A stretch of DNA of 64,000 nt, from positions 1 to 64,000 of IMG/VR virus record IMGVR_UViG_3300017963_000190. The stretch is one strand, 5' to 3'. The notes beneath the pieces are model-generated. The model worked only from the letters and a program-made list of their open reading frames with translations, did no database searches and was not told where the DNA came from. Each line of letters starts with the position of its first letter. Position 1 is the stretch's first letter. This document shows positions 42,253 to 61,883 of the stretch, piece after piece. The position numbers and the translations under genes were made by a program.

Positions 42253-42440
42253 AAAATAAAATGAGCCCCCAAGCGGCCAAACTTGAGGGCTCCCGGAGGT
42301 AAGAACGATACTCGAAGTGGGCACTCGAAGGCTAGGTGCGGGGCAAGTGGAGAATCGGGCTCCCTTGCGCGCTACCCAAGGAGGCCTCCCGTTATGCGTA
42401 ACCTTGGGGCCTGAGTCGCTGGCTTCTTTCTCGTTCAGCC
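42253..42440 (-). ncRNA. putative structured sRNA with anti-RBS segment UUCUUACCUCCGG
   Basis: promoter at 42447-42474, three hairpins, terminator GAGCCCTCAAG/CTTGGGGGCTC plus U-tract; no credible ORF. Confidence 0.6.
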
Positions 42441-42479
42441 AAGTAGAGTATAACCAGCAAAGCTCCGTTGTCAAGTCAC

Positions 42480-42728
42480 CTAGACGTTTTCGTAGGTGCA
42501 GAGAAACTTACCGATGCTTACCGTGAAGATCTTCCCCACCTCGTCTGGGTTGGCCTCGTCTTCCACGACTTCGCAGCGCACCGGGATAGGTCTGGGCCGC
42601 GCGATCACACGCACCAGCTGTCCAGTTTTACACTCTCGGTAGACCTTCCCTACCTCGACGCGGTTTAGGATCTCCCTAGCTTCTTCAACGTCGATGGCTT
42701 TCGGGATACGTTTGGGTGCGAGTGGCAT
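42480..42728 (-). CDS. hypothetical protein
   Basis: AAGGAG RBS. Confidence 0.7.
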   Translation of the reverse strand: MPLAPKRIPKAIDVEEAREILNRVEVGKVYRECKTGQLVRVIARPRPIPVRCEVVEDEANPDEVGKIFTVSIGKFLCTYENV

Positions 42729-42731
42729 TAG

Positions 42732-43367
42732 TTACTCCTTTTTGTTCTTGGACGGAAAAGGTGAAAGGTGCGTAGCAGCGTATTTTACGCCTTCCTCTAT
42801 TTTCTCTTGGAACGTAGGCGTTCCCTTCTTGTCTTGCGTTGCTGGAGGTTCGTTCTTTTCGATCTTGGCGATCAACTGCTCGCTGACGTGCAGGGACTTG
42901 AGGACAGCGCGCAGGTTATCGAGAGCTTGCTTGGCCTCGTGCATCTCTGTGATTTTTACGCTGGCCTCCTCCAACTCCTCGGTCAGGTCCGTTTCTTGCT
43001 GAAGCGCTATGGAAAGCTCCATCTCTGCAGAGTTACGGCGTTCATTCTCCAGGCGCAGCGCCTGCCGCAGCTTGTAGGTTTCCCTTTGCGCTTCGTCGCG
43101 CGCCTCTTCCATAGCCCTCGCTCGTAGCTCGTGGCGCTGCATCTCCTTGAGAAGGGTATTGACCTCTTGCTCAAGTTGGGTGACCTTGTTTGTGGGCGCG
43201 TAGTGCTTGTAGGCTTCGTCGAAGCATCTACTTGCAGCGTCGAAGAGGGCAGACCTCTCCATGGAATACTGCCCTTTAATGTTAACGCGGTCGTACAGCT
43301 TGCGCTTCAGGAGGTCTAGGAACAGCTTTTTCAGCTCGGCCTGCTGGTTGCCTTTGGTATCGGACAT
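42732..43367 (-). CDS. coiled-coil protein
   Basis: 211 aa, promoter upstream. Confidence 0.75.
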   Translation of the reverse strand: MSDTKGNQQAELKKLFLDLLKRKLYDRVNIKGQYSMERSALFDAASRCFDEAYKHYAPTNKVTQLEQEVNTLLKEMQRHELRARAMEEARDEAQRETYKLRQALRLENERRNSAEMELSIALQQETDLTEELEEASVKITEMHEAKQALDNLRAVLKSLHVSEQLIAKIEKNEPPATQDKKGTPTFQEKIEEGVKYAATHLSPFPSKNKKE

Positions 43368-43436
43368 GATATACTGTCTCCGTAGTGATCAGAGGCAGTA
43401 TAATCGGTGGGATTTACGCTGTCAAGGTTGCCGTGA

Positions 43437-43604
43437 TCAATCGTCTCGGATAACGCGTCCTCGGCAGGCTTTACGGGAGCGCTCTTTGCGCTGGTCAGTG
43501 TGCCTGCCAGCTCCCGAGCGGAGCCGGGCAGCCGTGGCGTAGGGATTACGGGGCTTCACTTCACCCTTTTCAATCACGAAGCTATTCTTTTTGCGCTTGC
43601 TCAT
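43437..43604 (-). CDS. small basic protein (not in ORF track)
   Basis: 55 aa MSKRKK..PRNPYA..AGRH; ATGA overlap. Confidence 0.7.
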   Translation of the reverse strand: MSKRKKNSFVIEKGEVKPRNPYATAARLRSGAGRHTDQRKERSRKACRGRVIRDD

Positions 43605-43795
43605 GGGTTTTGTCTCCGGTTTTTGTTGGCTGGGTTGTCCTTTGTAGTTGGGTGTTCGTTTTTACGCTCCAACTCGGTGCACACTTTACATTCATGCTCC
43701 CAGTAACCGTTGAAGTCCAGCTTACCCCAACCGTGGGTGAAGCCCTCGTGCACACCCCACGAGGTTTTACAGTCTGGGTTGCCGCAGGGCTTCAT
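43601..43795 (-). CDS. small Cys-rich protein
   Basis: CGNPDC..CKVC. Confidence 0.7.
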   Translation of the reverse strand: MKPCGNPDCKTSWGVHEGFTHGWGKLDFNGYWEHECKVCTELERKNEHPTTKDNPANKNRRQNP

Positions 43796-44130
43796 TCGTC
43801 ACCGTCCCCGAGATCCAGATCCTTCGCGCTCCACATTGCGCTCAAGGTCTCCTGGTCAATCTCCCGTACTAGTTTGGACGACAACCAGAAGTGCTCCCTT
43901 TCCTTGAAAGTAGGGTTTTCGCTCCACACCACGCACACCTTTACCATAGGGTGGCCATAATCCGGTCCACCGTCGCCTACATCGTAGAGCTCCTTAGGGT
44001 TTTCTGCATCCATTACACAGCGATCGATCACTACCCCTGAGACATCCCGGCCGCCGATAAATACCATGTCTCCGGCTTTGAAAGGCTGCCCTTTTTCTTT
44101 ATCTATCTTTGGTTTCTTCGCTTTAGCCAT
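43792..44130 (-). CDS. hypothetical protein
   Basis: coupled ORF. Confidence 0.7.
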   Translation of the reverse strand: MAKAKKPKIDKEKGQPFKAGDMVFIGGRDVSGVVIDRCVMDAENPKELYDVGDGGPDYGHPMVKVCVVWSENPTFKEREHFWLSSKLVREIDQETLSAMWSAKDLDLGDGDE

Positions 44131-44134: not shown

Positions 44135-44560
44135 TTACCCCCAAGTAATGTGCTCGCCCTTCTCCTGGGCGTAGGTAATCAGCTCCCGAAAGGCCGTCAG
44201 TTGCCGCAGGAGTCGCGCATCAGAGCGTCCGCAGTCAATCACCCGGCCGTTCTGGTACGCGTCCAGAACGTAAGGAGCGCGGGCTGACAGCTGGTTTATG
44301 AATCGCATCAGCTTTTGCTGGATACGTGGGTACTCTGTGATCTTGATCATGCCGCCGTGGTCGAATTCGATGTCCAGCATTTCCAGCAGCGCCCGCGCGT
44401 TGACGTTGGCTAGGTTCACCGAAGGGGTGAGGCACACGTCGTTCATGCCGTCGCAGTAATGCGAGACACCTTCACCCTCGGTGCGGTACCGGCACGGCGT
44501 GCAGAACTCGCAGGGGCGCTTCTCTACGATGAAATTGGCGACGTCAAACGTGATAGACAT
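44135..44560 (-). CDS. hypothetical protein
   Basis: AACGGAGGTAAA RBS. Confidence 0.8.
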   Translation of the reverse strand: MSITFDVANFIVEKRPCEFCTPCRYRTEGEGVSHYCDGMNDVCLTPSVNLANVNARALLEMLDIEFDHGGMIKITEYPRIQQKLMRFINQLSARAPYVLDAYQNGRVIDCGRSDARLLRQLTAFRELITYAQEKGEHITWG

Positions 44561-44609
44561 TGGCTTTACCTCCGTTGTTGGTGACAGTGTAACCAGGAAG
44601 CAGAGCGTG

Positions 44610-45059
44610 TCAAGTTTTACGTCGTACTTTTGCGGTTGCTACTCGAAGAGTGCTGCCGCGTTGCTCTTTTCTGCAGGGGCACCGCTCACTTTGTAGGATC
44701 CGCTCCAGCTTTCCCTGCATCGTCCAGTTGCTGAGCCATGACCTGAGGATTCCTAGGGAAACCTTCTTGTCCTGTTCTTGCACTTTAGGCAAAATCTCTG
44801 CAGCTCTAGCGCCTGGATTTTCAGCGATGAACTGCAGAGCCTTGTTCTTGGTGCGGTTTGAGTAACGTCTCCTCTTCTTTTTCTTCGCCTTTTCGTTCTC
44901 TGGAGAGCTGCTTTGCTTAGGTACAGGCAATCGCGCCTTTCTGCTCTTCTCTCCCTTCAGCATGTCGACATCTCTTCTGAGGGATGTCAGGATTTTTGTG
45001 AGGCGCTTGATCTCGCTCTCTAGGATCTGTACTCCAGGACTGGGGTGATGGGTTGACAT
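44610..45059 (-). CDS. basic protein, possible winged HTH
   Basis: ALQFIAENPG.RAAEI. Confidence 0.7.
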   Translation of the reverse strand: MSTHHPSPGVQILESEIKRLTKILTSLRRDVDMLKGEKSRKARLPVPKQSSSPENEKAKKKKRRRYSNRTKNKALQFIAENPGARAAEILPKVQEQDKKVSLGILRSWLSNWTMQGKLERILQSERCPCRKEQRGSTLRVATAKVRRKT

Positions 45060-45075
45060 GTTTGCTTCCTTTTTA

Positions 45076-45312
45076 CTACGCCTTTTCTGGTAGTCTATCT
45101 TCGTTGTCCTCGATGAATTCGCGGATCGTGTCCGCCATTGCCAGGAGCTTGCGCCACTGGCTCTTGTAGAGCGTTACGGGGTAGCGTTGGATTCCGTAGA
45201 CGGACACGCCGCCCTTGGCGCTTACTCGCAGGGTGGTACCTTGCTTCTGAAACTCTGCTAGCAGGGCTCGGGTTGCTTCCAATTCTCTTCGCAGTTGATC
45301 TTCGTTGGCCAT
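45076..45312 (-). CDS. conserved hypothetical protein
   Basis: VSAKGGVSVYG..RYPVTLY..QW. Confidence 0.8.
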   Translation of the reverse strand: MANEDQLRRELEATRALLAEFQKQGTTLRVSAKGGVSVYGIQRYPVTLYKSQWRKLLAMADTIREFIEDNEDRLPEKA

Positions 45313-45446
45313 GGTGTACCTCCGTTCTTGTTACGTGCACAGCGTAATCAGAGGTATTGACTGCGTCAAGTTTATCGCTTATTAAAATGGGGCGCAGCCG
45401 CTTATCTCTCGTAGGGACACGTGGTCTTTGGCAGCTGCGCCCCCGG

Positions 45447-45842
45447 CTAATTCGATTCGTCCAATGAAATCCCCAACGCGTGGGCTGCTGATTCCGCGTC
45501 GCATACTACGGACGATTGCATAATACCCCATTCTTTGACTTTTGGTAGCCACTCGACGACTTGCGCGTCTGTGAGCCCCACTGTTTCACCCATGCCATCG
45601 TTGGCCGCGATGAACATATTGCCGAAGATAGGCTGCGAGTAGCCGTAGTCTGTCGTTACCTGTCGGTTAGGCTCGCATGCGTAGAAGCCCTCGTCGTTGG
45701 CCCACAGGTCCACGCCGGGTACAAGGTGCAGGCAGGTAATAAGCCCTCCAACGATCTCTTGCATGGCGTCGAGGGTGTTTTCCATTTCTTCAACGCAAGG
45801 CGGCTCACCCATGCGCAGGGTGATAATCTTGATCTTAGCCAT
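45447..45842 (-). CDS. DUF3846-like protein
   Basis: LDAMQEIVGGLI..NDEG..PNR..I.G. Confidence 0.75.
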   Translation of the reverse strand: MAKIKIITLRMGEPPCVEEMENTLDAMQEIVGGLITCLHLVPGVDLWANDEGFYACEPNRQVTTDYGYSQPIFGNMFIAANDGMGETVGLTDAQVVEWLPKVKEWGIMQSSVVCDAESAAHALGISLDESN

Positions 45843-46041
45843 CGGCTTCCTCTTCAACAGAGTTAAGGAACGCTACAGCTTCCACCAATCCCATCCCGGT
45901 AGTTCTTCTGATGTACAGAATCACCGCAGGTTTGTTGCGCGTCGACAGCTGCCGCAGCAAAGGAAGCTCCAGGTCCATGCCGTCGTTGTAGGCCATTTCC
46001 AGAAAACTTCCGACGATGGTTTTCTTCTCGTAATCGCTCAT
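45835..46041 (-). CDS. small protein with ribosomal bL12-CTD-like motif
   Basis: NKPAVILYIRRTTGMGLVEA. Confidence 0.6.
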   Translation of the reverse strand: MSDYEKKTIVGSFLEMAYNDGMDLELPLLRQLSTRNKPAVILYIRRTTGMGLVEAVAFLNSVEEEADG

Positions 46042-46156
46042 GGTAGCTAAACCATCCTTGAAATAGGAAGGAGCAGCCCAGTCACTGGTTTGGATACTGG
46101 GTTTTCTCGGTGAGATAACCGGGCTGCTCCTTCGATAGGAATTAACTAGCGGTTTG

Positions 46157-46414
46157 TCACTTCGCTCGTGGGTAGACCACGTAGCCCATACCAAGAGTTT
46201 CCCACTGGCAGGGTACCTTGGTACAGCCCAGAGCGTCCTGCACGTCGTCGACGGACACAGCCGGGCCTTCCCAGAACCATCGACCCTTATAGTGCATCAA
46301 TTCTCCAGCACAGGAATCCTGCATATCGCGGACGAACCGCTGGTGGTCTGGGTGCGTGTAGTCTTCTGGGCGTACACCACGAGCTTCGTCATCATCAAAA
46401 GCGTTGTCCGTCAT
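46157..46414 (-). CDS. hypothetical protein
   Basis: HYKGRWFWEGPAV..GMGYVVYP. Confidence 0.8.
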   Translation of the reverse strand: MTDNAFDDDEARGVRPEDYTHPDHQRFVRDMQDSCAGELMHYKGRWFWEGPAVSVDDVQDALGCTKVPCQWETLGMGYVVYPRAK

Positions 46415-46440
46415 CTTGTTACCTCCATTTAGCCGAGAGC

Positions 46441-46662
46441 TTATTGGAGCTCGATCGTCCCATTCGCGATCATCGTGGCCGTCTCCACCATTTGAGCGAA
46501 CACCCTGGCCAGCTCTGGTGTCATATCCGCAGTGGCCGAAGCATTTACGTAGCGCTTTCCCATTGATGCTTTGTGTACTGTAACCCGGATATTCGAGTTA
46601 AGGTTTTCCAGGGACAAGACTGCTACCTCGTCGATGAGATTTGATTTCTTGATCGTAAACAT
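46441..46662 (-). CDS. hypothetical protein
   Basis: consensus RBS and promoter. Confidence 0.75.
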   Translation of the reverse strand: MFTIKKSNLIDEVAVLSLENLNSNIRVTVHKASMGKRYVNASATADMTPELARVFAQMVETATMIANGTIELQ

Positions 46663-46722
46663 GGCTCTTACCTCCGTTCGTTGATGGTATCAGTATAAGC
46701 GGCATTGTTACGCTGTCAAGTC

Positions 46723-47199
46723 TTACACGCGTTCCAGGAGCGCCTCGATTTCCCGCTGGTTGATGGGGATAGAGTTGAGCAAGCAAAAGGTGTTTTCGTA
46801 ATAGGCAGACCAGAATGCACCGTGCCGGGTAATGGTGAGCTTGGGCATGTCAACCTTCACGCTGTGTTCCATCGCTTCCAAGAGGCTCTTGTGCAGCTCT
46901 GGCTGCTCTTCCATATTCACCAGGGCAGACTCCTCTTCCATCCATTCGGTGAGGAATTCACCATTGCCATCTACGTTGGTTGGATCGATCCACACTGCAT
47001 TGCTGTCGGTGAACTCGATCGCCTCTACAGAGCGATCGTAACCAACAGCCGTGTGGAATACGAGGAGCTTATCCAGCAACCGGTTCACTAACTGACCGGT
47101 GCATGGTAGCACGCATGCGAGCGGCACGTTTGGGCTTTCTTCGTCAAAGCCTGAGCCTAGCTCCATCGCGTACAACACCAAATATTTATTGTGGGTCAT
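46723..47199 (-). CDS. hypothetical protein (paralogue of 32297-32944)
   Basis: shared motifs. Confidence 0.8.
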   Translation of the reverse strand: MTHNKYLVLYAMELGSGFDEESPNVPLACVLPCTGQLVNRLLDKLLVFHTAVGYDRSVEAIEFTDSNAVWIDPTNVDGNGEFLTEWMEEESALVNMEEQPELHKSLLEAMEHSVKVDMPKLTITRHGAFWSAYYENTFCLLNSIPINQREIEALLERV

Positions 47200-47319
47200 T
47201 ACGTTACCTCCATGTACATGCCCAGTTTAATCAGCTATGCTACGTAGTCAAGTTGGATGGAAATAAAAATGGGGCCACGCAGCAGAACGTGACCCCCAGG
47301 AGGAAAGCGATGCCAGTAA

Positions 47320-47727
47320 CTACTCAGCGTCGCGCGGATAGTCTTGTGGGTTGAGGCCGATGCCTTTGATGGACTGGAGCAGCAGATCGTAGTTGTGCTC
47401 GATGCGGCTCCCGAAGCGCCGGACGAACGATCCCAACGGCTCCATGTGCGTCTCTGCCTCGCTCATAACGGCGGCGACATAGACGGTGGCAGTGCATGAT
47501 GGCATCATATACATGCCGCCATCGTTTTTGCAGCAGTCGATTTCGCATTGGTCTACCCCAGAACCGAATTTGTAGTGCACCGCCTCGTTGTCCACCACCA
47601 GAATACCGTCGGGGCCTTCCAAGATGGCCCAGCTGGCGTCGGTTCCATAGGCGGTGAGGTTGCGATCATCGCAGTTGTCTTCGATGAACTTGGCCACGTT
47701 GTAGACTTTGACCTGTTTCATTGGCAT
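47320..47727 (-). CDS. hypothetical protein
   Basis: start MPMKQ behind AACGGAGGTAA. Confidence 0.75.
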   Translation of the reverse strand: MPMKQVKVYNVAKFIEDNCDDRNLTAYGTDASWAILEGPDGILVVDNEAVHYKFGSGVDQCEIDCCKNDGGMYMMPSCTATVYVAAVMSEAETHMEPLGSFVRRFGSRIEHNYDLLLQSIKGIGLNPQDYPRDAE

Positions 47728-47796
47728 TTTTGTTACCTCCGTTCGTTGTTGCACCTAGTATAATCGGCTTTGTTGCACTGTCAAGCCTTTACTAGG

Positions 47797-48408
47797 CTAG
47801 TAGTACCGGCATACCGGGCGCTTCCATACGCATCCAGCAACGGTATCTCGGAAGAGCTTTTTTAGGTTGGCCTTGACGAACCCCTCCTTGAGGGAATACT
47901 TGTTTCCATCGTAATCCTCTGCGAGGTAATAAAATTGGCCATTAGTGTCCTGCATCTGCTTGAGAACGCGGAGGTTTATACAACCGTTCACGTCAAATAC
48001 AGCTAGATCGCCTGGCCACAGCATGAAGAGAGAAGGCAGCGGCCCCGCATCCTGGCATGCCTTGCCGAAATCCTCCGAGAAGTAATCCTGGAGATTATCC
48101 TGAATGCACTTTTTGAGCTGGGCCTCCGATTCTCTGTAAACAGGCTGCAGCTTCGGGTGCTCAAAGCACACGACCGCCCTTTCACAGTCGTTTTCGTACC
48201 AGAGACGGCCACTGTAATGCTGCCCAATGTACTGAGCTTGCAACGAAAGATTCTGCTCCGCCCACTTGTAGGTTACCGCGAGACCTCCATCGCCGTCCTC
48301 GGTATCGTACTGGACCACCCCCGGGAAAATATGGACCGCGTAGTCGGCCCTTCCCCATGGGGTTTGTGTTCCTTTCTTAGGCTCGAAGCTTTTCACCTTC
48401 ACGTTCAT
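47797..48408 (-). CDS. conserved MGE protein (TPWG..WYExDC motif)
   Basis: motifs; consensus RBS. Confidence 0.8.
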   Translation of the reverse strand: MNVKVKSFEPKKGTQTPWGRADYAVHIFPGVVQYDTEDGDGGLAVTYKWAEQNLSLQAQYIGQHYSGRLWYENDCERAVVCFEHPKLQPVYRESEAQLKKCIQDNLQDYFSEDFGKACQDAGPLPSLFMLWPGDLAVFDVNGCINLRVLKQMQDTNGQFYYLAEDYDGNKYSLKEGFVKANLKKLFRDTVAGCVWKRPVCRYY

Positions 48409-48461
48409 GGCTGTTACCTCCGTTCGTTTTTGTTCTTACATTATCAGTATAAGCAGCTTTG

Positions 48462-48668
48462 TTACGCTGTCAAGCCAAGCTCCTCAGGAGTCTTAGTTGG
48501 TTTTCTGCCGCTCCAGTGCGTTGTCTCTGTCCCACATTTTTTGTGCCGTTGCTGGACCCACTGCCTTTTCTCCTCGCAGTAGTAAGCCTCCCAGCACTGG
48601 CGCCGGGGTACCCAGCGCCTGCACTCAGGGCACCAGAAGTGATCGTCGTAGCCAACGTATGGTTCCAT
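48462..48668 (-). CDS. small Cys-rich protein
   Basis: GGAGG RBS. Confidence 0.65.
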   Translation of the reverse strand: MEPYVGYDDHFWCPECRRWVPRRQCWEAYYCEEKRQWVQQRHKKCGTETTHWSGRKPTKTPEELGLTA

Positions 48669-48669
48669 G

Positions 48670-49020
48670 CTAGCATCCTCCTGCGCACGTGCACACACGG
48701 CAGCCGTTTTCGTCGTAGCTCTCAGGCATGTGGACACTGACGCCCAGTTTCTTTTTCAGCAGTGCCAGAAGCGCGGCACCGTCGGCTTCATTGACGTGCA
48801 TCTTTTCCATGATGTATCCAATATCGACAGTTTGGTACGCACGAACGGCCATCACGGTGCCTCCGCTTCCGCCGTTGCGCATCCACGCGATCATGCTGCC
48901 GAAGTCGCAGTCGTCCTCAAAGCTCACCTTGTCAGAAAGGATGCAGCCGTACCGCGTCCCATTACCGGGCTCCCAGATGACAAAGCGCGTAGACTCTCCT
49001 TCAATAAATCGTGTAGGCAT
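48670..49020 (-). CDS. hypothetical protein
   Basis: EPGNGTRY motif. Confidence 0.75.
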   Translation of the reverse strand: MPTRFIEGESTRFVIWEPGNGTRYGCILSDKVSFEDDCDFGSMIAWMRNGGSGGTVMAVRAYQTVDIGYIMEKMHVNEADGAALLALLKKKLGVSVHMPESYDENGCRVCTCAGGC

Positions 49021-49032
49021 CCTCTTACCTCC

Positions 49033-49665
49033 TTAGAACTGGCCGCTGTCTTTCATGGCCTGGTCAAGCTGCTCTACGAGCTGGATAACTTGCTGCTCCA
49101 GTCGCAGCCATGGGGCAATCGTGCGCGTCTTGAACCGCTTGGGGCGATCGTAATAATCAGAAGAGGACCCCACGTAACCGCCGTCTAGTTTTTCAGCTGC
49201 AGCATGCACCCGCAACGACAACTGGCGCCGTTTAACTGCCAGCTCCCCACGTCCCATCATTGGGATATCCTTAACATGGGGAGCCTCTGGCTTTACATCG
49301 TCCCACACGAGCCGCGCTTGGACGATCTTACATTCGGTACCCGTGAATACGTAGCGCCACCGCTCCCCTTCCTCCCCAGCCATCTCGATGAAGGAGCCCG
49401 CTTCCACGAAAGGCCCTAGGGCCTTAAAAAAAGCGTCGTCATCTACAGATGCTTTTTCGCCAGCGAAACCGATGTCCTCGATGTTCCCCTCGGCGTCGGT
49501 GGAGTACACCTCCCATCCCATCTCGAACAAGATGTCATCGAAAGACGCGCGTTTGCTGGGGTTGCCTGTCTGCCACTCCATGTTGATGAGGGCCTGGCGC
49601 GCGGGCTCGATCTTCTCGGCTCTCATGAAAAAGCTAGTCGCGATGCAGTTGATTCCGTATCCCAT
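49033..49665 (-). CDS. hypothetical protein
   Basis: LGPFV..GSFIEM.GEEGERWR. Confidence 0.8.
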   Translation of the reverse strand: MGYGINCIATSFFMRAEKIEPARQALINMEWQTGNPSKRASFDDILFEMGWEVYSTDAEGNIEDIGFAGEKASVDDDAFFKALGPFVEAGSFIEMAGEEGERWRYVFTGTECKIVQARLVWDDVKPEAPHVKDIPMMGRGELAVKRRQLSLRVHAAAEKLDGGYVGSSSDYYDRPKRFKTRTIAPWLRLEQQVIQLVEQLDQAMKDSGQF

Positions 49666-50609: not shown

Positions 50610-50618
50610 GGAATTCTC

Positions 50619-52090: not shown

Positions 52091-52094
52091 CGTT

Positions 52095-53008: not shown

Positions 53009-53009
53009 C

Positions 53010-54760: not shown

Positions 54761-54820
54761 GTGGGCGCTCCGTTTCTGTAGTTTGCTTACGTTAATAGTG
54801 TAATCAGCGCCCTATCTGTG

Positions 54821-55138
54821 TCAAGCCTGCCCTCTTTCTACTCTGTAGAGCTCGCTGCGGAGCAGGAATACGTCACGTAGCATGTCGAACCGTTCTTTGT
54901 AGGGGATCATTCGGAGAAAAGCCAGGAGCTCTTTTTTGTAGGGCAGTACGATTCCGAAGGTCATGAACTCCCGGCCATCTTCTGTTTCAATCACAGGAAC
55001 CACTTGCCCCATCTGACCGACGTGGGCAAACTTTGTGATGTGCCCAACCGAGATCGGTTGATCCTCATTGGACACAATCATCACCTTTCCTTTTAGTAGG
55101 TCTGTACAGTATGTGTGGATTTCGTCTACCGGGATCAT
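54821..55138 (-). CDS. hypothetical protein
   Basis: GGAGG RBS. Confidence 0.75.
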   Translation of the reverse strand: MIPVDEIHTYCTDLLKGKVMIVSNEDQPISVGHITKFAHVGQMGQVVPVIETEDGREFMTFGIVLPYKKELLAFLRMIPYKERFDMLRDVFLLRSELYRVERGQA

Positions 55139-55196
55139 GGTTCCCCTCCCCGCCTGAGATGGAGCAGTGGGGGATTTACCTCACTGCTCCTGTTTT

Positions 55197-56054
55197 TCAG
55201 TCGATGAGCAGGAAAGGGCTATCGCCGTTCTCCGTGGCAGTCAGGTAACTCGGCAACTCCTCCCCTTCCTCATCAGCGGCATCCTCCAGCAGGATACCAG
55301 CTCCCCGTTCCTCTGCATGCGCTTCCATCAACCGACGCTGCAGCAGCTCATTGTCAACGTCGTCCAGCTGCGAGCCGGGCTCCATCAGTGCGAAGCGCGC
55401 GAAGTCGATGCTGGAGGTGTTCATACGGTCCTGTACCTGCTTGAGGTCCTCTCCGTGCTTCTCCAGGCTTTTACGTACGTCGATAGCCTGAGCCTTGGCA
55501 TTTGCCACCGCGCGCTGCAGGAAGTCTGCCGCGTCTTCTGGCAACACCATATCGTAACCTCTGAGTCTGGTCACGACGCTGCGGATGCTTTTGTAGTCAG
55601 CGTTTTTGACTGCCACTTTCAGCTCGTCCACCAAGCCGCGCAGATCCACCAGCATATCCTGTAGCACTTCCTCGTTTTCACCTTCCACCTTCCAGCGCGC
55701 CACGCGAAAACGAATTACAGAGTGCTGGGCTTCCTGGTTGAACTTGTCAATTTTTACGGTCCATTTGCGCACCGCTTTATCGATCTCCCTGCGCGAGTCG
55801 CGGGTGCAGAAAATACCCAGATCCCCAGGGACACCCAGATTAGCGATGGCTCGTTTGATACGGTTGCGCAGCGCTTGAGCTTTGTTGTACTCGGCTCGGT
55901 TCTGGATCACCCGGTCTGTGGTCCAGGTGGCCTCCTCCCGCTCGTCTTCTGTGACGACGTCTTCATCCGACCGCCTGTAGGTAAGCCCGCCGTGCACGCT
56001 GCAGCGCACGTTCAGCAGGTAGCATGGTTTCATTTTCTTATAGGTGGTTGGCAT
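55197..56054 (-). CDS. helical hypothetical protein next to AAA ATPase
   Basis: 285 aa, AACGGAGGTAA RBS. Confidence 0.8.
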   Translation of the reverse strand: MPTTYKKMKPCYLLNVRCSVHGGLTYRRSDEDVVTEDEREEATWTTDRVIQNRAEYNKAQALRNRIKRAIANLGVPGDLGIFCTRDSRREIDKAVRKWTVKIDKFNQEAQHSVIRFRVARWKVEGENEEVLQDMLVDLRGLVDELKVAVKNADYKSIRSVVTRLRGYDMVLPEDAADFLQRAVANAKAQAIDVRKSLEKHGEDLKQVQDRMNTSSIDFARFALMEPGSQLDDVDNELLQRRLMEAHAEERGAGILLEDAADEEGEELPSYLTATENGDSPFLLID

Positions 56055-56154
56055 TGGTTACCTCCGTTCACTGTGGTCTGTTTTGCCTGTGTCCTGTACA
56101 GAGTATAAACAGCGGGAGCGTCCGTGTAAAGTTTGACGCTCCCGCTATGGTGAT

Positions 56155-57810
56155 TTAGTTGGCGTCGGTGGGAACGAAGACTTGGCGGTAGTCGTCCACA
56201 TCGATGTTGGAGGCTTCTGGATCGTTGGGATCGTTGGCTTTGCGCTGCTTAGCACCCCACTGGCGCACACGTTCCAGGGTGCCGTCTCCCTGCCAACCTT
56301 CGAGGACTGGACGGATCAGCTTGGAAGCATTGACGACGTCTTCCTCGGTCAAGGCCCGGTCTTCGTAGTTGGCAAGCATGAGAGCATCCGTCACAGCCTG
56401 CTCAACCTCAGCTGGGGTGTATCCAGCAAGCTGTTTGGCGACCTGTCCAAAGTCCAGCTCCAGCTCAGAGACGAGCTTGTCTGCGGCTACTGAGCGCCAC
56501 TTTTTGGAGATGACACTAAGAACCTTCACTCGATCCGCGGTGTTAGGTACATCGATCCAGAATTTGGTGTCGAAGCGGCCGGCGCGGAAGAACTCCGCGG
56601 GTACCTTCAACGGATCATTGGCGGTACCGATGATGTAGATGGGTTTGTCAACTTCTGCCAACCAAGTCAGAAAATCATTACCAACGCGCGCCGTCGTGCC
56701 GCCGTCCGTCTCCGATGCACCCCCGCCGAATCCCTGCAGGCCCTTCTCGATCTCATCGATCCACAGGATGCAGGGAGCCAGCGCTTCCACCACCTGGCGG
56801 GCCTGGCGCCAGTTACTCTCAGATTGCCCCTGGAATTTTCCAAAGAGCGCGCCAATGTTCAGCCGGATGACCGGCAGCTTCCAGGCAATGCCTACGCATT
56901 TTGCGGTGAGGCTCTTGCCCACGCCAGGAGGTCCGGCGAAAAGGGCGCCACGTGGGCGTGGGGTCTTCGTTTCGCGCTGTGAGAGCACGAAAGAGGAGTG
57001 GGCGATGATCAGGTAGTCCTTGAGCAGGTCAAGGCCACCGATGTCATCCATACCCGAAAGCAGGGGCTCAATCCATTCTAGCGCTTCGCTCTTGAGGAGT
57101 GCGCGCTTTGACTTCAAGAGCACCTCAGGCTCCACCGTGCCTACCTCAGCCAGCGAAACAGCTAGGGCCTGCTGCGCCTGCTGGTCTTCCAGACCAACCA
57201 ACGCGTCCAGCACCTGGTCCATTTTACCCTCTGCCTCGATTGCCTTTTGGATACGGTCACCCGCTTCGCCAGGAATAGATTCCACCATACCGGTGACAGT
57301 GCGCCGCAGCTCCTCTCGGTTTGGCAATGCCAGCTCCACCTCAATGAATTCCTGTGGCGCCGCTTCTTTGTCCACCACCACTACCTGCACCCAGTCCTGT
57401 GGCTTAGATGAGCGTGCCTGCTTGGCCAGGTCTTTGAGCAGCCGGGCAGCCTGGAGTCGGTTGGGAGAGTTTTCAGCGATGTGGCCGGAGAGATCTTCCA
57501 TGATGACCATGATCGGCCCACCGCGTTTGAAGTCGATCAGGTACTCAAGGATGCCGTCGGCCTGCTGGTCCAGTGGACCGAAGGCTGGGTTTTTGCACAG
57601 CGTGGCCAGGTCCGTACGCGGCTTCGTGTCTTTACCAACCTCCAGGAGGCCAGTGGACGACTTCCAAATAAACACACTCCGGAACTTCAGTGCGGCTGCC
57701 GCTCCAATGAGGTGCCCCTCAGCTCGCTTTTCTTCGTTGGTGCGCGCCCAGATAAGGCCGGAGCGGGCGCGGATGAGCATCTGAACTGTGTTGGAGAATT
57801 TCTTACACAT
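56155..57810 (-). CDS. AAA+ ATPase (Ycf46/SpoVK-like)
   Basis: GPPGVGKS, WIDEIEKG, TANDP..PAEFFRAGRFD. Confidence 0.9.
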   Translation of the reverse strand: MCKKFSNTVQMLIRARSGLIWARTNEEKRAEGHLIGAAAALKFRSVFIWKSSTGLLEVGKDTKPRTDLATLCKNPAFGPLDQQADGILEYLIDFKRGGPIMVIMEDLSGHIAENSPNRLQAARLLKDLAKQARSSKPQDWVQVVVVDKEAAPQEFIEVELALPNREELRRTVTGMVESIPGEAGDRIQKAIEAEGKMDQVLDALVGLEDQQAQQALAVSLAEVGTVEPEVLLKSKRALLKSEALEWIEPLLSGMDDIGGLDLLKDYLIIAHSSFVLSQRETKTPRPRGALFAGPPGVGKSLTAKCVGIAWKLPVIRLNIGALFGKFQGQSESNWRQARQVVEALAPCILWIDEIEKGLQGFGGGASETDGGTTARVGNDFLTWLAEVDKPIYIIGTANDPLKVPAEFFRAGRFDTKFWIDVPNTADRVKVLSVISKKWRSVAADKLVSELELDFGQVAKQLAGYTPAEVEQAVTDALMLANYEDRALTEEDVVNASKLIRPVLEGWQGDGTLERVRQWGAKQRKANDPNDPEASNIDVDDYRQVFVPTDAN

Positions 57811-57887
57811 CGTCGTTACCTCCGTTGGCGTTAACTTCTAGGCAAACTATAATCGGAGGTATTGACCGCGTCAAGTTTGACGTCGTA

Positions 57888-58190
57888 TTATTTTTGATGC
57901 ATCGCGTTGTGCATGTGCACGAAGTTAGTGCCCTGCATTTGGGCCTGCTGCACTGCGCGCCGAAAAGCAGGGTGGTTACGTTCCTGTAGAGCTGCCATCA
58001 CGCAGACATCCTTCATCCCATTGGGAAGGGCAGCGCCCACCAGGCGTACTGCGCCATTGGGCATTTTTACGACGCGGGCTGTGCCTTGGGCTAAAGCTTC
58101 CTCGATTTTGGCGAGCGCTTTGCGCCTAGCAGCTTCCTCGCACCGACGTTGCGCTGCTTGCATTTCTTGTAGTCTTCTGTCACACGGCAT
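57888..58190 (-). CDS. hypothetical protein
   Basis: AAGGAGGT RBS. Confidence 0.75.
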   Translation of the reverse strand: MPCDRRLQEMQAAQRRCEEAARRKALAKIEEALAQGTARVVKMPNGAVRLVGAALPNGMKDVCVMAALQERNHPAFRRAVQQAQMQGTNFVHMHNAMHQK

Positions 58191-58371
58191 GTCGTACCTC
58201 CTTCATCACGCAAAGGATAATCTGGTAGCCATGTGGTGTCAAGCCTGTGTGCGGACGTACTAGGGGTATTAGGGGGTAGGGTTACACCCTTTAAGGTAAT
58301 AGATTTACAAAGAGGGCGGGGATGGCCAGCAGGAAAGCCAACCGACTGGAAATGGATTTTGTGTAGAGAGG

Positions 58372-58713
58372 CTACATGCCTCCCATACCCTTGTGCCCCA
58401 CGATGGTGTTGGCCTGATCCAGCAGTTCTGTTGCTTGCTCTTTGATCTCTTCCGCAAACTTCGGCGCATTGGTCACCAGCGTCTGCAAAATAGATACTGC
58501 CTTGGTGGCCATTTGCGGGTTCTCGGCCAGAAGAGCTTGGTGTGCCTGAGTGAGCGTCTTGTCGATGATCTTTACCGCTTCTGTCATGCTACGCCGTAGC
58601 TTGTCAGAGTCAGTTTCATACGCTTGTAAAAACTGCTGCAGCTGCGCAGTCTTGGTTTGCTTCCGGTACAGGACTCCACCAACACGAATGGCGTCTGCAG
58701 GTTTGTCTGCCAT
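58372..58713 (-). CDS. hypothetical protein
   Basis: 113 aa helical. Confidence 0.7.
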   Translation of the reverse strand: MADKPADAIRVGGVLYRKQTKTAQLQQFLQAYETDSDKLRRSMTEAVKIIDKTLTQAHQALLAENPQMATKAVSILQTLVTNAPKFAEEIKEQATELLDQANTIVGHKGMGGM

Positions 58714-58819
58714 GGCTAAATCCTTCCTGATAGTCGTCTGGATTATCCGACGAACGGTTCACGTTGTTTTGGGATGATCAGTATATAGTAATCAGGAAGT
58801 GAAGAGACGCAGGAATGAA

Positions 58820-59218
58820 TCAGGCAGCTTTTTCTTCGGCACGCAGCTCCTTACGCACGCGAGCATGGATTTCTTTTGCAGATTTCTTACCCAGCTCATG
58901 CAGGGATATCAGCGATACCGCCCACAAGATGAAGCGCGTATGCGGAATCATCATGCGCTTCGCGGCGGCTTGGGTGAGCTCCAGATCTTGCGGGTACATG
59001 GTGATGGTGACCATCTTGCGGTCCCGCTCGTCCGGCTCGAACCATTCCGGAAGAAGTTTGAGGGACTTTCCGGAGTTGAAAATACCATTGGCTGCCTCTG
59101 TTGCGCAGGAGGCTATGAACTGGGCCCGTGACATCTGGGTGCGGTTGCAGGCTGCAGTGATGATCTCTCTCATCTGTCTGGGAACACGGATTGACAGTGT
59201 GGTTACGCTATCGGACAT
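58820..59218 (-). CDS. tandem ribbon-helix-helix DNA-binding protein
   Basis: LSIRVP..I..AC..MSRAQFI and a second repeat VTITM..RFI. Confidence 0.65.
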   Translation of the reverse strand: MSDSVTTLSIRVPRQMREIITAACNRTQMSRAQFIASCATEAANGIFNSGKSLKLLPEWFEPDERDRKMVTITMYPQDLELTQAAAKRMMIPHTRFILWAVSLISLHELGKKSAKEIHARVRKELRAEEKAA

Positions 59219-59291
59219 GCTTTCTCTCCTAATCAGTACTAGGACTAGCATAATCATTGGACATTACAGCGTCAAGTTATTTTATTGGATT

Positions 59292-59537
59292 TCAAGGTTC
59301 GGAGAGGAGACGGTCGTCGGATTTGATGCGAACAGTGGCGACATCGCCTGTAGTATTGGTGAGATAGACCTCAGTCTCTCCCCACCAGTAGCGGCAGTCT
59401 TCGAGCTCCGAGTCGATCCTGCCGCAGGCTCTCCGCACCACGTTCAGGTCGGCTTGGTTGCCTCGCGTGATGAAGTGCGCCGGGCGAAAGGTTTTCTTGT
59501 TGACGATCTCGATACGGCGATTAGGGACGGGGCGCAC
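59292..59537 (-). CDS. hypothetical protein
   Basis: fills gap; weak start. Confidence 0.5.
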   Translation of the reverse strand: MRPVPNRRIEIVNKKTFRPAHFITRGNQADLNVVRRACGRIDSELEDCRYWWGETEVYLTNTTGDVATVRIKSDDRLLSEP

Positions 59538-59566
59538 AGTAACTGCTGCCCCGTCCCTGGTGTCTG

Positions 59567-60616
59567 CTACTCGTCGTCGAACAGACTCGCCATCGCCGAA
59601 GGGACCGCGGCGTCAACCTCCTGCTCATCGTCTGGGTCCTCATCCATGACGTCGTCATCGTCCACCATTTGCTCCTCAGGCGCTTCCGTTTCCACCGCCT
59701 GTGTCTCCACAGGCTCCTCGGTTTCCTCAACCCCAGAAGTTTCCTGCACCTCCTCAGCGTCATCTGCGGGGCGCCGCAGTTTCAGCTGCTCAGCGCATGC
59801 AGTCAGGAGCGCATCGCGGTCGGATTCCCCTGTCGCATAGCTCAGCGCCAGCATGACCAGCTCCCGAGCAGTGTACACATCGACGGTGTCCTCTTCCACC
59901 TCCTTGGTGGATAGTGCTGCCACTACCTTGCGCAGCTCCTTCTTGCCAGGGCGCACTGCTGTTCCAGTGATACCTGATGCCGCCTTGGTAGTCTTGGACT
60001 TCTTGCCGCCGGCAGCCTCGATGACACGCTGGACAGCTCGGGGCTGCGCAGCCTCTTTCTTCTTGCGGGCGATCATCAGCGCCGCACTAATAGTGATTTT
60101 GTTACCGTCGACTGCCTGGAGGACTGCCTTCGCGGCACCCGCCAGAGTAATCATTTGGTCTACCCAACCGGGACTGCGGTGGAAGCACTCACCGATTTCT
60201 TTGGAGTCCAGCCCACGTTGCTGATACCGCTGCACCAGGCCGATCTTCTCTGCATAGGTGAGGTCATCCTTGTCCAAGAAGGACTTGGTCATCATGTCCT
60301 CGGCCTGTTCCTCGTTCACATGGAACACGCGCAAAGGAATGGAGATCTTCGCGTTCGGGTCCTTCTCGAAAACCTTGCGCAGGGCTCGGATCCGGCGCTC
60401 ACCGTCGATCAGGATGAAGGGCTGCTCTTTGTTCGCACGGTCCGGCCGCACCCACAGCGCATCGTACAGGCCGTTCTCGGCAATGTCCTCGGCGAGCTCT
60501 GCGATGCGTCGGAACCGCTTGCGTGCGTTGAATCCTTTGCGCACCTGGACCAGTCCGGGGTGATCGATTGAGTAACCGCGGCTGCGATGCACGCCTTCAG
60601 GTAGTTTCTGTCCCAT
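59567..60616 (-). CDS. ParB/Srx N-terminal domain DNA-binding protein with acidic tail
   Basis: FNAR..ELAEDIAENG..LIDGERRIRA; HTH KEIGECFHRS..WV. Confidence 0.85.
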   Translation of the reverse strand: MGQKLPEGVHRSRGYSIDHPGLVQVRKGFNARKRFRRIAELAEDIAENGLYDALWVRPDRANKEQPFILIDGERRIRALRKVFEKDPNAKISIPLRVFHVNEEQAEDMMTKSFLDKDDLTYAEKIGLVQRYQQRGLDSKEIGECFHRSPGWVDQMITLAGAAKAVLQAVDGNKITISAALMIARKKKEAAQPRAVQRVIEAAGGKKSKTTKAASGITGTAVRPGKKELRKVVAALSTKEVEEDTVDVYTARELVMLALSYATGESDRDALLTACAEQLKLRRPADDAEEVQETSGVEETEEPVETQAVETEAPEEQMVDDDDVMDEDPDDEQEVDAAVPSAMASLFDDE

Positions 60617-60718
60617 AAGTAATCCTCCGTTCGTAATTGGGTCGCTGTGCGACCGTTTTTGTTTTCACGTTTTGAGCTTAACCAGCTCGGTTGCGCGTGT
60701 AAAGGTAGCCGGTCAAAT

Positions 60719-60964
60719 TTATTTTGCCGGCAGCTCCAGACGCCCCTCGGCGAAAGCGATGGCGGTTTCGAGCATCAGGATCAACTCCTTGGTCTTCTCA
60801 ACCGTCATGGTTCCAGTGCCTGACACGTTGACGCCATTGAACGCGCGCCTTCCCGGCCGTTCAGGGACTCTTTGTACGGCTACCTGAATCTCCACGTTGC
60901 CTGTGTTATCGGTGGCCAGCGTTACTAGCTCATCGTTGAATGTGTTGGTTCTGATTTCTGCCAT
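60719..60964 (-). CDS. hypothetical protein
   Basis: AGGAGGT RBS, promoter. Confidence 0.75.
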   Translation of the reverse strand: MAEIRTNTFNDELVTLATDNTGNVEIQVAVQRVPERPGRRAFNGVNVSGTGTMTVEKTKELILMLETAIAFAEGRLELPAK

Positions 60965-61031
60965 AACACACCTCCTGTGTGTTTAGTATAAGCCGCTCTG
61001 ATACGCTGTCAATATTGAAAGGCAAATTTTT

Positions 61032-61238
61032 TTACATCCCGAAGAATGTGCTGAGGTGGTCATCCATGCGTCGCCTGAGCTCAGCCTCCATCGTTGGGAT
61101 CGTCTCTGGTGAGAATGAAACGACACCAGTCTGAGACAGATCCTGCATCGTTCTGATCGTGTCCACGAGCTCCGCATCAGTCATCGTTTTGAAGTAGCCC
61201 CGTACTGTCGTTGCATATTTAATTTGATCGTGATTCAT
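61032..61238 (-). CDS. hypothetical protein
   Basis: ACGGAG RBS. Confidence 0.7.
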   Translation of the reverse strand: MNHDQIKYATTVRGYFKTMTDAELVDTIRTMQDLSQTGVVSFSPETIPTMEAELRRRMDDHLSTFFGM

Positions 61239-61264
61239 CGTAATTTCTCCGTTGTCAGTTAAAA

Positions 61265-61390
61265 TGGGAGCGCCGGGAGTCGAACCCAGATCAGAAGAGC
61301 TTGATGAACGGAGGTAAATCGATAACCAAGCCGCGAAGCTCCACGTGTCGGTCGAGGAGTGGTGCTTTTCCGATAGACCACCTCGCTCCT
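61265..61390 (-). ncRNA. tRNA-like RNA (126 nt) with anti-RBS loop
   Basis: acceptor AGGAGCG/CGCTCCC-A, T-arm CTGGG-TTCGACT-CCCGG, D-like arm, own promoter at 61397-61425; no canonical anticodon loop. Confidence 0.7.
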
Positions 61391-61421
61391 GGGCAAAGGA
61401 TAAGCAGATGATACTACAGCG

Positions 61422-61883
61422 TCAAGCTCCGACAGCTGCTTTCTTTTTCCTAGGAGCCTTTTTGGTTTTCTTTGGGGCCGCTTTCTTCTTGGGAGCCTTG
61501 GCAGTTTTACTAGATGCTTTCTTCTTGGGAGCCTTACTAGACTTAGCAGACTTAGCAGACTTTGCAGTTCTCTTCACCGTCCTCTTGGGTTTCGCGAAGG
61601 CGAGCTCCCACGGAGCTCGCGTGGGGAAGGCGTTGTAGATATACTTGGCGGTCTCCTCGTCGATCTGCTTGGTGAGCACGTGGCCACCAGGGCACGAGGC
61701 TACAAGGAAGTACATGGAGGTATTATGTCGCCGTCGCAGCCAAAAAACAGAGTGCATTCCTGCATCTGCTGCTAGGTCCATCCACTTCTTGTTGTCCGCT
61801 CCTACCCAAGGCTTTCCGTCAAGGGGGATGTGCACCTTGCTGGTGGGAACCTCTACATCCGGATTGGATTTTTTTGATGGCAC
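61422..61883 (-). CDS. protein with histone H1-like K/A-rich tail
   Basis: repeated APKKKA/SAK C-terminus. Confidence 0.75.
   Translation of the reverse strand: MPSKKSNPDVEVPTSKVHIPLDGKPWVGADNKKWMDLAADAGMHSVFWLRRRHNTSMYFLVASCPGGHVLTKQIDEETAKYIYNAFPTRAPWELAFAKPKRTVKRTAKSAKSAKSSKAPKKKASSKTAKAPKKKAAPKKTKKAPRKKKAAVGA

Follow-up and report, generated by a model that had tools for sequence, protein, structure and literature searches.

The window analysed here is the first 64 kb (64,000 nucleotides) of the genome of a 260-kb uncultivated phage. Its minus strand carries two blocks of genes with uniform ribosome-binding leaders, together with three predicted ORF-free transcripts, termed RNA1, RNA2 and RNA3, which contain antisense copies of these leaders. 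The features are as follows.

20339–41272 (minus strand): class-1 block of at least 21 repeated cassettes, each with a promoter (TTGACA/TTGTTA ... CTTATCTT), a 5'UTR that usually carries a GCGGG...CCCGC hairpin, and an invariant CCGGAG(G) followed by TAA.
44560–63048 (minus strand): class-2 block of genes behind TTGACA-16-TATACT promoters, with 5'UTRs of about 30 nt ending in (g)AACGGAGGTAA.
42447–42474 (minus strand): RNA1 promoter of the sigma-70 type, TTGACA-16-TATACT (11 of 12 matches).
42253–42441 (minus strand): RNA1, a predicted stand-alone sRNA of about 190 nt, made of a structured 5' domain, a single-stranded seed and an intrinsic terminator.
42293–42305 (minus strand): RNA1 seed UUCUUACCUCCGG, complementary to class-1 leaders of the ...CCGGAGGTAAGA(A) subtype.
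42253–42292 (minus strand): RNA1 intrinsic terminator, a 12-bp stem (42292–42263) plus the U-tract AUUUUAUUUU.
61397–61425 (minus strand): RNA2 promoter, TTGACG-17-TATCCT (9 of 12 matches).
61266–61389 (minus strand): RNA2, a predicted RNA of about 123 nt with a tRNA-like acceptor/T-arm half and a seed hairpin, at the 5' end of the transcript that continues into gene 61238, with ParB further downstream.
61298–61332 (minus strand): RNA2 seed hairpin, an 8-bp stem and a 19-nt loop (61306–61324); the loop carries UUUACCUCCGUUC (61306–61318), complementary to the class-2 leader GAACGGAGGTAAA.
61267–61289 (minus strand): RNA2 T arm (CUGGG-UUCGACU-CCCGG) and the 3' strand of the acceptor helix, whose 5' strand is at 61384–61389.
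23440–23766 (minus strand, approximate): RNA3, a predicted ORF-free transcript of about 330 nt behind a "type-3" promoter-like repeat, with a 3' end not defined by a clear terminator.
23510–23522 (minus strand): RNA3 seed UUUUACCUCCGGU, in a predicted 12-nt hairpin loop, complementary to class-1 leaders of the ACCGGAGGTAAA(A) subtype.

The sequence CGGAGGTAA occurs 25 times in the window, against 0.37 copies expected from shuffled sequences. Twenty-one copies are minus-strand ribosome-binding sites, each 5–9 nt before an ATG, and fall into two classes: aaCCGGAGGTAA at 20–41 kb and gAACGGAGGTAA at 44–63 kb. CCGGAGGTAA was found 14 times on the minus strand, always between 20859 and 41189, and AACGGAGGTAA 7 times on the minus strand, always between 44576 and 57826. 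The remaining four copies are in the reverse orientation. Three of them lie in the transcripts RNA1, RNA2 and RNA3, whereas the fourth, at 9472, is located inside an ORF. About 19% of the window is intergenic by a crude gene map, so that three of four copies falling there corresponds to a binomial p of about 0.02. The genes at 23–32 kb are simply small: we considered stop-codon recoding as the cause of the fragmented ORFs in this region, but no single reassigned stop restored long ORFs.

The observation of the earlier note, that RNA1 and RNA2 each carry the exact antisense of one leader class, was confirmed, and both antisense segments lie where it had placed them. Some details need correction. 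RNA3 had been missed. The description of RNA2 as tRNA-like holds only for a 6-bp acceptor helix and a T arm with a GGUUCGA loop. The note had further placed each RNA just upstream of the block with its matching leader. This is exact for RNA1, but class-2-type leaders also occur upstream of RNA2, at 62029, 63048 and contig position 64735.

Perfect complements of 11 nt or more are largely class-specific. RNA2 matches 8 start regions, all at 44–64 kb, and RNA3 matches 12, all at 20–41.5 kb. RNA1 matches 7 start regions at 20–41.5 kb and 1 at 44–64 kb; its matches to the start regions of genes 37088, 34817, 31979, 29821, 26366 and 21668 are perfect over 12–13 nt. No such complement was found in about 41 start regions below 20 kb. 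Calculated duplex energies agree with this pattern.

The antisense segments are predicted to lie in single-stranded or loop positions. The fold of RNA1 in the window is, however, not exceptional (z = −1.55), and neither is that of RNA3 (z = 0.06). Part of the RNA2 seed can pair within its own loop in the window (unpaired probability 0.2–0.3 at two positions).

To see whether these elements are kept, we compared the window with related phages. A homolog of RNA1 with the same architecture lies upstream of the sigma gene in an ~80% relative (L115, positions 3934–4122), where no gene is called. In both sequences a 5' domain closed by a GAACGA/UCGUUC-type helix is followed by the unpaired (A/C)UUACCUCC and a terminator, and the L115 fold has a z-score of −4.9. 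The body of RNA1 is largely different between the two phages, but the seed-plus-terminator module is kept. The same UUACCUCCGGG lies before a terminator in a 3'UTR of a further relative, L004. Homologs of RNA2 were found at the same syntenic site in two related phages, L006 (2852–2975) and L119 (923–1026). The L006 homolog has the promoter TTGACA-17-TATACT. The RNA2 loop is 18/19 identical in L119, while the 5' part is only 24/50 identical and 19 nt shorter.

The helices of RNA2 show compensatory changes. All 11 of 11 acceptor and T-stem pairs are formed in three homologs, and 2 pairs changed on both sides (acceptor C:G to U:A, T stem G:C to A:U), although with only three sequences the shuffle control is weak (52/500). 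The seed stem shows compensatory changes in L119 and L006 (U:A to C:G, and G.U to G:C to C:G). In a MAFFT/RNAalifold analysis of the seed hairpin the homolog of the 350-kb phage was misaligned; the pairs were therefore checked by script. The 350-kb phage uses the leader GAAACGGAGA (GAAACGGAG occurs 16 times) and its RNA2 loop reads UCUCCGUUUC, whereas the window uses GAACGGAGG and its loop reads CCUCCGUUC. Two co-varying positions link these genomes. In L115, on the other hand, the two visible class-1 leaders read CCGGAGGAAA, with AAA rather than TAA, while the seed keeps UUA. Only three lineages carry RNA2 and two to three carry the RNA1 module, so the co-variation rests on few events.

Searches for known families gave no match. 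ARAGORN found no tRNA or tmRNA gene, and only a spurious partial call under relaxed settings. None of the three RNAs matched an Rfam family, including C4, at gathering score or at E ≤ 1 to 10. On a 251-nt region containing RNA2, Rfam reported no tRNA even at E ≤ 10, only a weak sub-threshold resemblance to mascRNA and a chance-level partial hit to permuted tmRNA (E = 6.1). RNA2 as a tRNA, an intron-containing tRNA or a tmRNA was therefore rejected. Wider searches with acceptor/T-arm patterns in viral, metagenome and genome collections returned only the phage of the window and the 350-kb phage lineage; the other metagenome hits are chance matches in GC-rich DNA. A descriptor scan of 1.6 Mb of collected loci gave no further homolog. 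No relatives at the DNA level were found among deposited phages, and the AAA-ATPase reaches only about 30% identity to cluster-O mycobacteriophages. The complement of a second conserved loop of RNA2, CCGACA, is not enriched, which speaks against a second seed. A 75-nt unit at 42135–42205 was considered as a sponge for RNA1, but by eye only its GGAGG core would pair. Literature searches for a phage sRNA with an anti-SD seed, or for a tRNA-like phage sRNA, revealed no direct precedent in the literature searched.

Based on these results we propose that the phage encodes three trans-acting regulatory RNAs, on the same strand as its genes, which occlude the ribosome-binding sites of its early genes. 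Each presents a 12–13 nt antisense copy of the translation-initiation leader shared by one class of phage mRNAs. RNA1 and RNA3 match two subtypes of the CCGGAGGTAA leader of about 20 small-gene cassettes at 20–41 kb, and RNA2 matches the GAACGGAGGTAA leader of the strongly promoted genes at 44–63 kb. As an RNA accumulates it would pair across the Shine-Dalgarno sequence and its flanks. The duplex of 11–13 bp would compete with the roughly 6 bp that the leader can form with 16S rRNA, so that 30S binding would be blocked and a whole gene class turned down together. In this view RNA1 is a classic promoter-seed-terminator sRNA. RNA2 would be the 5' portion of an operon transcript, with an acceptor/T-arm minihelix that probably lets host tRNA-processing enzymes (RNase P, RNase Z) cut it out and stabilize it. 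The analysis itself establishes the sequences, their class-specific complementarity, their predicted exposure, and their conservation and co-variation in the few relatives; expression, processing, pairing and regulation in vivo and the repressive sign of the effect are inferred. One sRNA gene would have to titrate 10–20 strongly transcribed mRNAs, and the relatives L004 and L005 have aacGGAGG leaders but lack RNA2 at the syntenic site. We give this reading a probability of about 0.5.

The interpretation of the earlier note, an RNA-guided translational switch or a 16S anti-SD mimic that also titrates host mRNAs, is thus partly supported. The antisense segments are not chance, are class-specific and are conserved while the rest of each RNA diverges, but whether they would occlude or license translation does not follow from these data. 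A pure 16S anti-SD mimic is unlikely, since RNA2 of the 350-kb relative carries UCUCC, which matches its own GGAGA leaders, and not CCUCC. The suggestion that the RNAs explain the conservation of the leaders is weakened: both leader classes are embedded in repeated promoter-plus-5'UTR cassettes, which explain leader uniformity independently, L004 and L005 keep their leaders without RNA2 at that site, and other phages that share the AAA-ATPase have equally uniform leaders with no antisense copy in the 14–22 kb examined.

Other explanations appear less likely. The seeds might pair with the leaders without simple repression: they might protect or stabilize the mRNAs, guide a nuclease (an RNase III-type cut in the leader), activate translation by remodeling the structured class-1 5'UTR, or titrate strong host Shine-Dalgarno sites as part of host shut-off. 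This is a tentative alternative that shares the complementarity and conservation evidence. The 3' strand of the GCGGG/CCCGC hairpin could alternatively pair with the SD, all seeds contain the universal ACCUCC/CUCC core and so could touch host SDs, and the phage encodes an L7/L12 C-terminal-domain protein, which suggests that it manipulates translation. Pairing directly over the SD is, however, most simply inhibitory, the UCUCC seed of the 350-kb phage fits its own leaders better than canonical host GGAGG sites, and no nuclease or chaperone partner was identified. It is unlikely that the reverse motifs are mere by-products, either cassette fragments inserted in inverted orientation or sequence preferred next to terminators. 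The region is indeed built of repeated cassettes, a sense GGAGGTAA also sits in a terminator loop at 27569–27602, one reverse copy lies inside an ORF, and L004 and L005 lack RNA2. But similarity to the cassette does not extend beyond the 12–13 nt seed, the seed is the best-conserved part of RNA1 and RNA2 across relatives with diverged flanks, the stems of RNA2 keep pairing through compensatory changes, and the seed changes in step with the leader in the 350-kb phage.

A purely cis-acting role of RNA2, with the tRNA-like module as a processing or stability signal and the loop pairing only with ribosome-binding sites on the same transcript, as in the P1 c4-icd-ant arrangement, also seems improbable. 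RNA2 has no clear terminator of its own (only the acceptor stem followed by UUUU) and lies 16–27 nt upstream of the next gene's SD in all three phages, and in L006 the first downstream SD matches 9–10 nt of the loop. This SD is a poor match in the window (7 nt, GGAGA) and in L119 (AAGGAGC, about 4–5 nt), whereas the majority leader of the block matches 11–13 nt; the loop tracks the majority leader and not the adjacent gene. Least likely is that the plus-strand GGAGGTAA copies are ribosome-binding sites of small plus-strand genes, a possibility that the earlier note had named as a refutation. At RNA3 the plus strand reads GGAGGTAAAAGTGATG, followed by an 11–12 codon ORF, and mechanical plus-strand ORFs overlap all three loci. 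However, there is no start codon at workable spacing after 42295 or 61310, the nearest ATG in the homologs is 2 nt (L115) or 0 nt (L006) from the SD, and no ORF is conserved. A gene call on this strand in L006 is absent from the identical L007. RNA1 is overlapped only by mechanical TTG/GTG ORFs, and no credible ORF on either strand explains the motifs.

The closest known system for RNA2 is the C4 antisense RNA of phages P1/P7, with the related P4 CI RNA. C4 is a phage-encoded small RNA made from the 5' part of an operon transcript and released by RNase P; its loops pair with downstream mRNA, and one loop occludes a ribosome-binding site (PMC5320573). RNA2 likewise lies between a promoter and the next gene in three phages, has a helix/T-arm module of the kind RNase P recognizes, and presents a predicted anti-RBS loop. 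It differs in lacking any match to the C4 model, in having one seed loop and not two, and in that its predicted targets are a class of at least 8–12 genes sharing a leader and not one immunity operon. RNA1 resembles terminator-proximal-seed sRNAs of bacteria, including 3'UTR-derived ones, and the C-rich anti-SD sRNAs of Gram-positive bacteria such as RsaE/RoxS: its seed is pyrimidine-rich, short, conserved above the rest of the RNA and predicted to be accessible, it complements the SD regions of many mRNAs, and in L004 the module lies in an mRNA 3'UTR. In contrast to these, it is encoded by a lytic-type jumbo phage and would be aimed at the phage's own uniform leaders, the complementarity extends into flanks that 16S rRNA cannot pair with, and no chaperone is known. 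With tRNA and tRNA-like RNAs (mascRNA, the tmRNA tRNA-like domain, bacterial Y-RNA-like YrlA) RNA2 shares an acceptor-type helix stacked next to a 5-bp T stem with a UUCGA(N)U loop. It has no anticodon arm or canonical D arm, its middle region is variable (L119 lacks 19 nt of it) and no CCA is encoded. Protein-based control of phage early translation, such as the T4 RegA repressor and the T4 RegB nuclease, which cuts GGAG in SDs, also shuts off many early mRNAs together through a shared feature of their ribosome-binding regions; here the proposed effector is RNA and the specificity would come from base pairing.

A more far-reaching possibility, which we consider unlikely, is a modular, RNA-programmed translation schedule, in which interchangeable seeds on stable scaffolds (a tRNA-type minihelix for RNA2, a terminator module for RNA1 and RNA3) each address a whole promoter/leader class. 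The tRNA-like half of RNA2 might then dock on the ribosome or recruit RNase P to leader-bound mRNAs, acting as an adaptor and not as a passive blocker. Together with the 17 antisense "type-3" promoters facing the class-1 cassettes, this would be a genome-scale antisense switch from early to later expression.

Temporal control in large phages is usually ascribed to promoters, sigma factors, phage RNA polymerases and a few RNA-binding proteins. A set of phage sRNAs that each recognize the shared leader of a gene class would add a translational layer acting on dozens of genes at once, and would give a natural example of a seed displayed on a tRNA-type scaffold. The seed-leader rule could also be used to find similar systems in other uncultivated phages.

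The window equals positions 1-64000 of a 260-kb uncultivated phage (IMG/VR contig UViG_3300017963_000190), has a G+C content of 53.8% and carries almost all of its genes on the minus strand. No deposited phage is similar at the DNA level. The following products were identified:

40287-41177: sigma-70-family factor of 296 aa
56155-57810: AAA ATPase
59567-60616: ParB-like protein
53010-53447 (minus strand): protein with a ribosomal L7/L12 C-terminal domain (E = 1.6e-14, above the Pfam cutoff)
28752-29318 (minus strand): 188-aa product matching only the middle of the Mg-chelatase ChlI / AAA domain (profile positions 73-191 of 207), possibly a fragment or a minimal ATPase

A DUF7227 protein is encoded as well. 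The L7/L12-type protein is conserved in relatives (L004:15443-15844 and L112:5781-6173), which hints that the phage lineage manipulates translation.

The core leader motif CGGAGGTAA occurs 25 times in the window, whereas 0.37 occurrences are expected. On the minus strand CCGGAGGTAA was found 14 times, always between 20859 and 41189 (class 1), and AACGGAGGTAA 7 times, always between 44576 and 57826 (class 2); looser aacGGAGG forms reach 63 kb and beyond. Each copy precedes an ATG by 5-9 nt. The flanks of the motif (CC or AAC upstream, TAA downstream) cannot pair with a canonical 16S 3' end. The earlier note was therefore right in stating that the conservation of the leaders exceeds what SD pairing needs.

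To find out why the leaders are so uniform we aligned the upstream regions, which showed that each class is the end of a repeated promoter-plus-5'UTR cassette. Class 2 follows near-consensus TTGACA-16-TATACT promoters and a UTR of about 30 nt. Class 1 follows promoters of the type TTGACA/TTGTTA...CTTATCTT and a UTR of about 45 nt, which usually holds a GCGGG...CCCGC hairpin and then runs into an invariant CCGGAG. Across the paralogous class-1 cassettes (20339-41272) this hairpin is kept by varied pairs, for example GGCG/CGCC at 38504 and 37809 and GGGCGG/CCGCCC at gene 20339, and its 3' strand could alternatively pair with the SD. Two leader classes thus mean two promoter/UTR classes. Other phages that share the AAA ATPase (loci L058/L059, L066/L070 and L069, plus strand) also have very uniform extended leaders, with TCAATGGAGAAC occurring 13 times, CAAGGAGACCA 16 times and GAAAGGAGAA 11 times. 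In the DNA examined none of them has an antisense copy that is not an opposite-strand RBS; the reverse copies in L066 are RBSs of opposite-strand genes. Leader uniformity therefore does not by itself call for an sRNA.

Only four reverse copies of CGGAGGTAA exist in the window. One of them (plus strand, 9472-9480) lies inside the ORF 9252-9785, where the minus-sense sequence reads CCUUACCUCCGAG, and is probably due to chance. The other three are located in the few ORF-free, promoter-fed minus-strand transcripts predicted from the sequence:

42253-42441 (minus strand): RNA1, with an 11/12 promoter and a 12-bp terminator
61266-61389 (minus strand): RNA2, with a 9/12 promoter
about 23440-23766 (minus strand): RNA3, behind a different, highly conserved promoter-like repeat

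RNA3 had been missed by the earlier note, whose observation of antisense copies in RNA1 and RNA2 is confirmed and extended here. According to a crude gene map 19% of the window is intergenic. No start codon at usable spacing follows the plus-strand motif at 42295 or 61310, and only mechanical TTG/GTG ORFs overlap the loci. Close to RNA1, a second strong promoter (TTGACA-18-TATACT; 42135-42242, minus strand) drives a unit of only about 75 nt that ends in its own terminator and contains AUGGAGG and a possible 12-codon ORF. This unit lies between RNA1 and a perfect 12/12 promoter for gene 42063. A sense SD copy without a gene was found at 27569-27602, in a 13-bp palindromic terminator hairpin whose loop is GGAGGTAA on the minus strand and therefore UUACCUCC on the plus strand.

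In order to assess class specificity we scored the longest perfect complement between each seed region and every SD-preceded start region.

Start regions with a perfect complement of 11 nt or more to each RNA
RNA2: 8 in the 44-64 kb block, 0 in the 20-41.5 kb block, 0 below 20 kb
RNA3: 0 in the 44-64 kb block, 12 in the 20-41.5 kb block, 0 below 20 kb
RNA1: 1 in the 44-64 kb block, 7 in the 20-41.5 kb block, 0 below 20 kb

RNA1 best fits leaders ending ...GGAGGTAAGA(A), with matches of 12-13 nt at six genes, whereas RNA3 best fits ACCGGAGGTAAA(A), so that the class-1 genes split between two RNAs. Calculated duplex energies show the same preference.

RNA1 is predicted to fold into a 5' domain closed by GAACGA/UCGUUC, followed by a largely unpaired UUACCUCC and the terminator. 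The seed of RNA3 falls in a predicted 12-nt hairpin loop, although this RNA as a whole is not unusually stable. The predicted fold of RNA2 comprises a 6-bp acceptor-type helix, a variable middle, an 8-bp hairpin with a 19-nt loop carrying the seed, and a T arm with a UUCGACU loop. RNA2 is not a tRNA as judged by ARAGORN or Rfam. In a distant AAA-linked phage a 123-nt tRNA-shaped sequence (L083:9374-9496, plus strand) has a perfect 7-bp acceptor, T arm, D arm and CCA, but about 45 extra nt in the middle; it may be an intron-containing or long-arm tRNA.

Relatives were found through the AAA ATPase and neighbouring proteins. In a 350-kb phage (L006/L007, 53% AAA identity) RNA2 lies at the same place, between homologs of the 153-aa and 68-aa proteins. 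Its acceptor and T arm are kept with compensatory changes, its seed stem is GCUUGC/GCAAGC and its 16-nt loop reads CUUUCAUCUCCGUUUC. The dominant leader of that phage is GAAACGGAGAaa (GAAACGGAG occurs 16 times) and, apart from 9-mers inside ORFs, the only same-strand reverse copy in 21.7 kb is this loop. Relative to the window, the change from GGAGG to GGAGA in the leaders is matched by CCUCC to UCUCC in the loop, and likewise (G)AAC to GAAAC is matched by GUUC to GUUUC.

In a phage in assembly GCA_024449895.1 (loci L111, L115 and L119; 66-80% protein identity) RNA2 is again at the syntenic site. The acceptor pair changes from C:G to U:A, and seed-stem pairs change from U:A to C:G and from G.U to G:C. 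The loop is 18/19 identical, while the 5' part is only 24/50 identical and 19 nt shorter. The leaders of this phage are aacGGAGGtaa, like those of the window. The same phage has an RNA1 homolog upstream of its sigma gene. Its body has a mostly different sequence, the predicted fold is strong (z = -4.9), and a 9-nt unpaired AUUACCUCC sits directly before the terminator. The two class-1 leaders visible in L115, however, read CCGGAGGAAA while the seed keeps UUA. In L004 (65% AAA identity) UUACCUCCGGG is located between a stop codon and a terminator, that is, in a 3'UTR, with a second copy in the terminator loop. As further counter-evidence, L004 and another relative, L005, lack RNA2 at the syntenic site although they keep aacGGAGG leaders. 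Pattern searches of three large collections yielded no further RNA2 lineage.

The promoter-like repeat in front of RNA3 (type 3) is roughly 40 nt long and occurs 20 times (TTGAC...ATGGTAACGCGTGAGGGTTTAACC). It consists of an A/T-rich stretch, TTGAC, about 12-14 nt and then ATGGTAACGCGTGA(G/C)GGTT(T/A)AACC. Its copies are located as follows:

plus strand, 17 copies pointing antisense into the class-1 gene cassettes: 19958, 20484, 20977, 21780, 24329, 25089, 25649, 27535, 28095, 28619, 29470, 30878, 32139, 37226, 38647, 39918 and 49797
minus strand, three sense copies, before the sigma gene, before RNA3 and before gene 23227: 41320, 23764 and 23381

The repeat occurs nowhere else in the 260-kb contig or in IMG/VR, but one further copy sits before the sigma gene of the NCBI-sourced relative L115. 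The terminator hairpin at 27569-27602 lies just downstream of a plus-strand type-3 element. Terminator-like hairpins on the plus strand (ACCTCCGG...CGGGGGT followed by TGGTTT; 37096-37114, 39746-39765, 27954-27971, 31462-31477, 33483-33500 and 36186-36202) lie exactly opposite class-1 leaders and could stop antisense transcripts just after they cover the SD. In addition, a repeated motif CCCCTCTCTATACAAAAT (TTTTGTATAGAG on the other strand) occurs in tandem upstream of the sigma gene in both the window (41490-41560, minus strand) and L115 (4450-4510), and is scattered downstream of type-3 elements (plus-strand copies near 28720, 29590, 32260, 40040 and 49930). It may be an operator. Given the antisense type-3 copies and the hairpins opposite the leaders, the class-1 cassettes may also be silenced by cis-antisense transcription, with RNA3 under the same control. 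This is speculation, but it fits an antisense-based early-to-later switch.

Based on these results, the interpretation offered in the earlier note, an RNA-guided translational switch or a mimic of the 16S anti-SD, is supported only in part. A pure 16S mimic is unlikely because of the UCUCC seed in the 350-kb phage. The position of RNA2 at the head of an operon and its acceptor/T-arm minihelix parallel the C4 RNA of phages P1/P7, which is cut from an operon leader by RNase P and occludes a ribosome-binding site with one of its loops (PMC5320573), but RNA2 is not a member of that family by sequence or structure. The RNA2 loop follows the majority leader and not the SD of the adjacent gene, which argues for action in trans. 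The support comes from comparative sequence evidence only: conservation, class specificity and predicted exposure of the seeds were observed in the sequences, whereas pairing with the leaders, a repressive effect and any effect on host mRNAs would be inferences from them. The system is best regarded as a putative variant of antisense-RNA control of translation initiation. The seeds are the most conserved parts of otherwise fast-changing RNAs, are displayed in predicted loops or linkers, are class-specific and, in one case, change together with the leader, which is the signature of base-pairing regulators. The simplest mechanism would be occlusion of the SD and its flanks by a duplex of 11-13 bp, by which a class of mRNAs would be shut down together.
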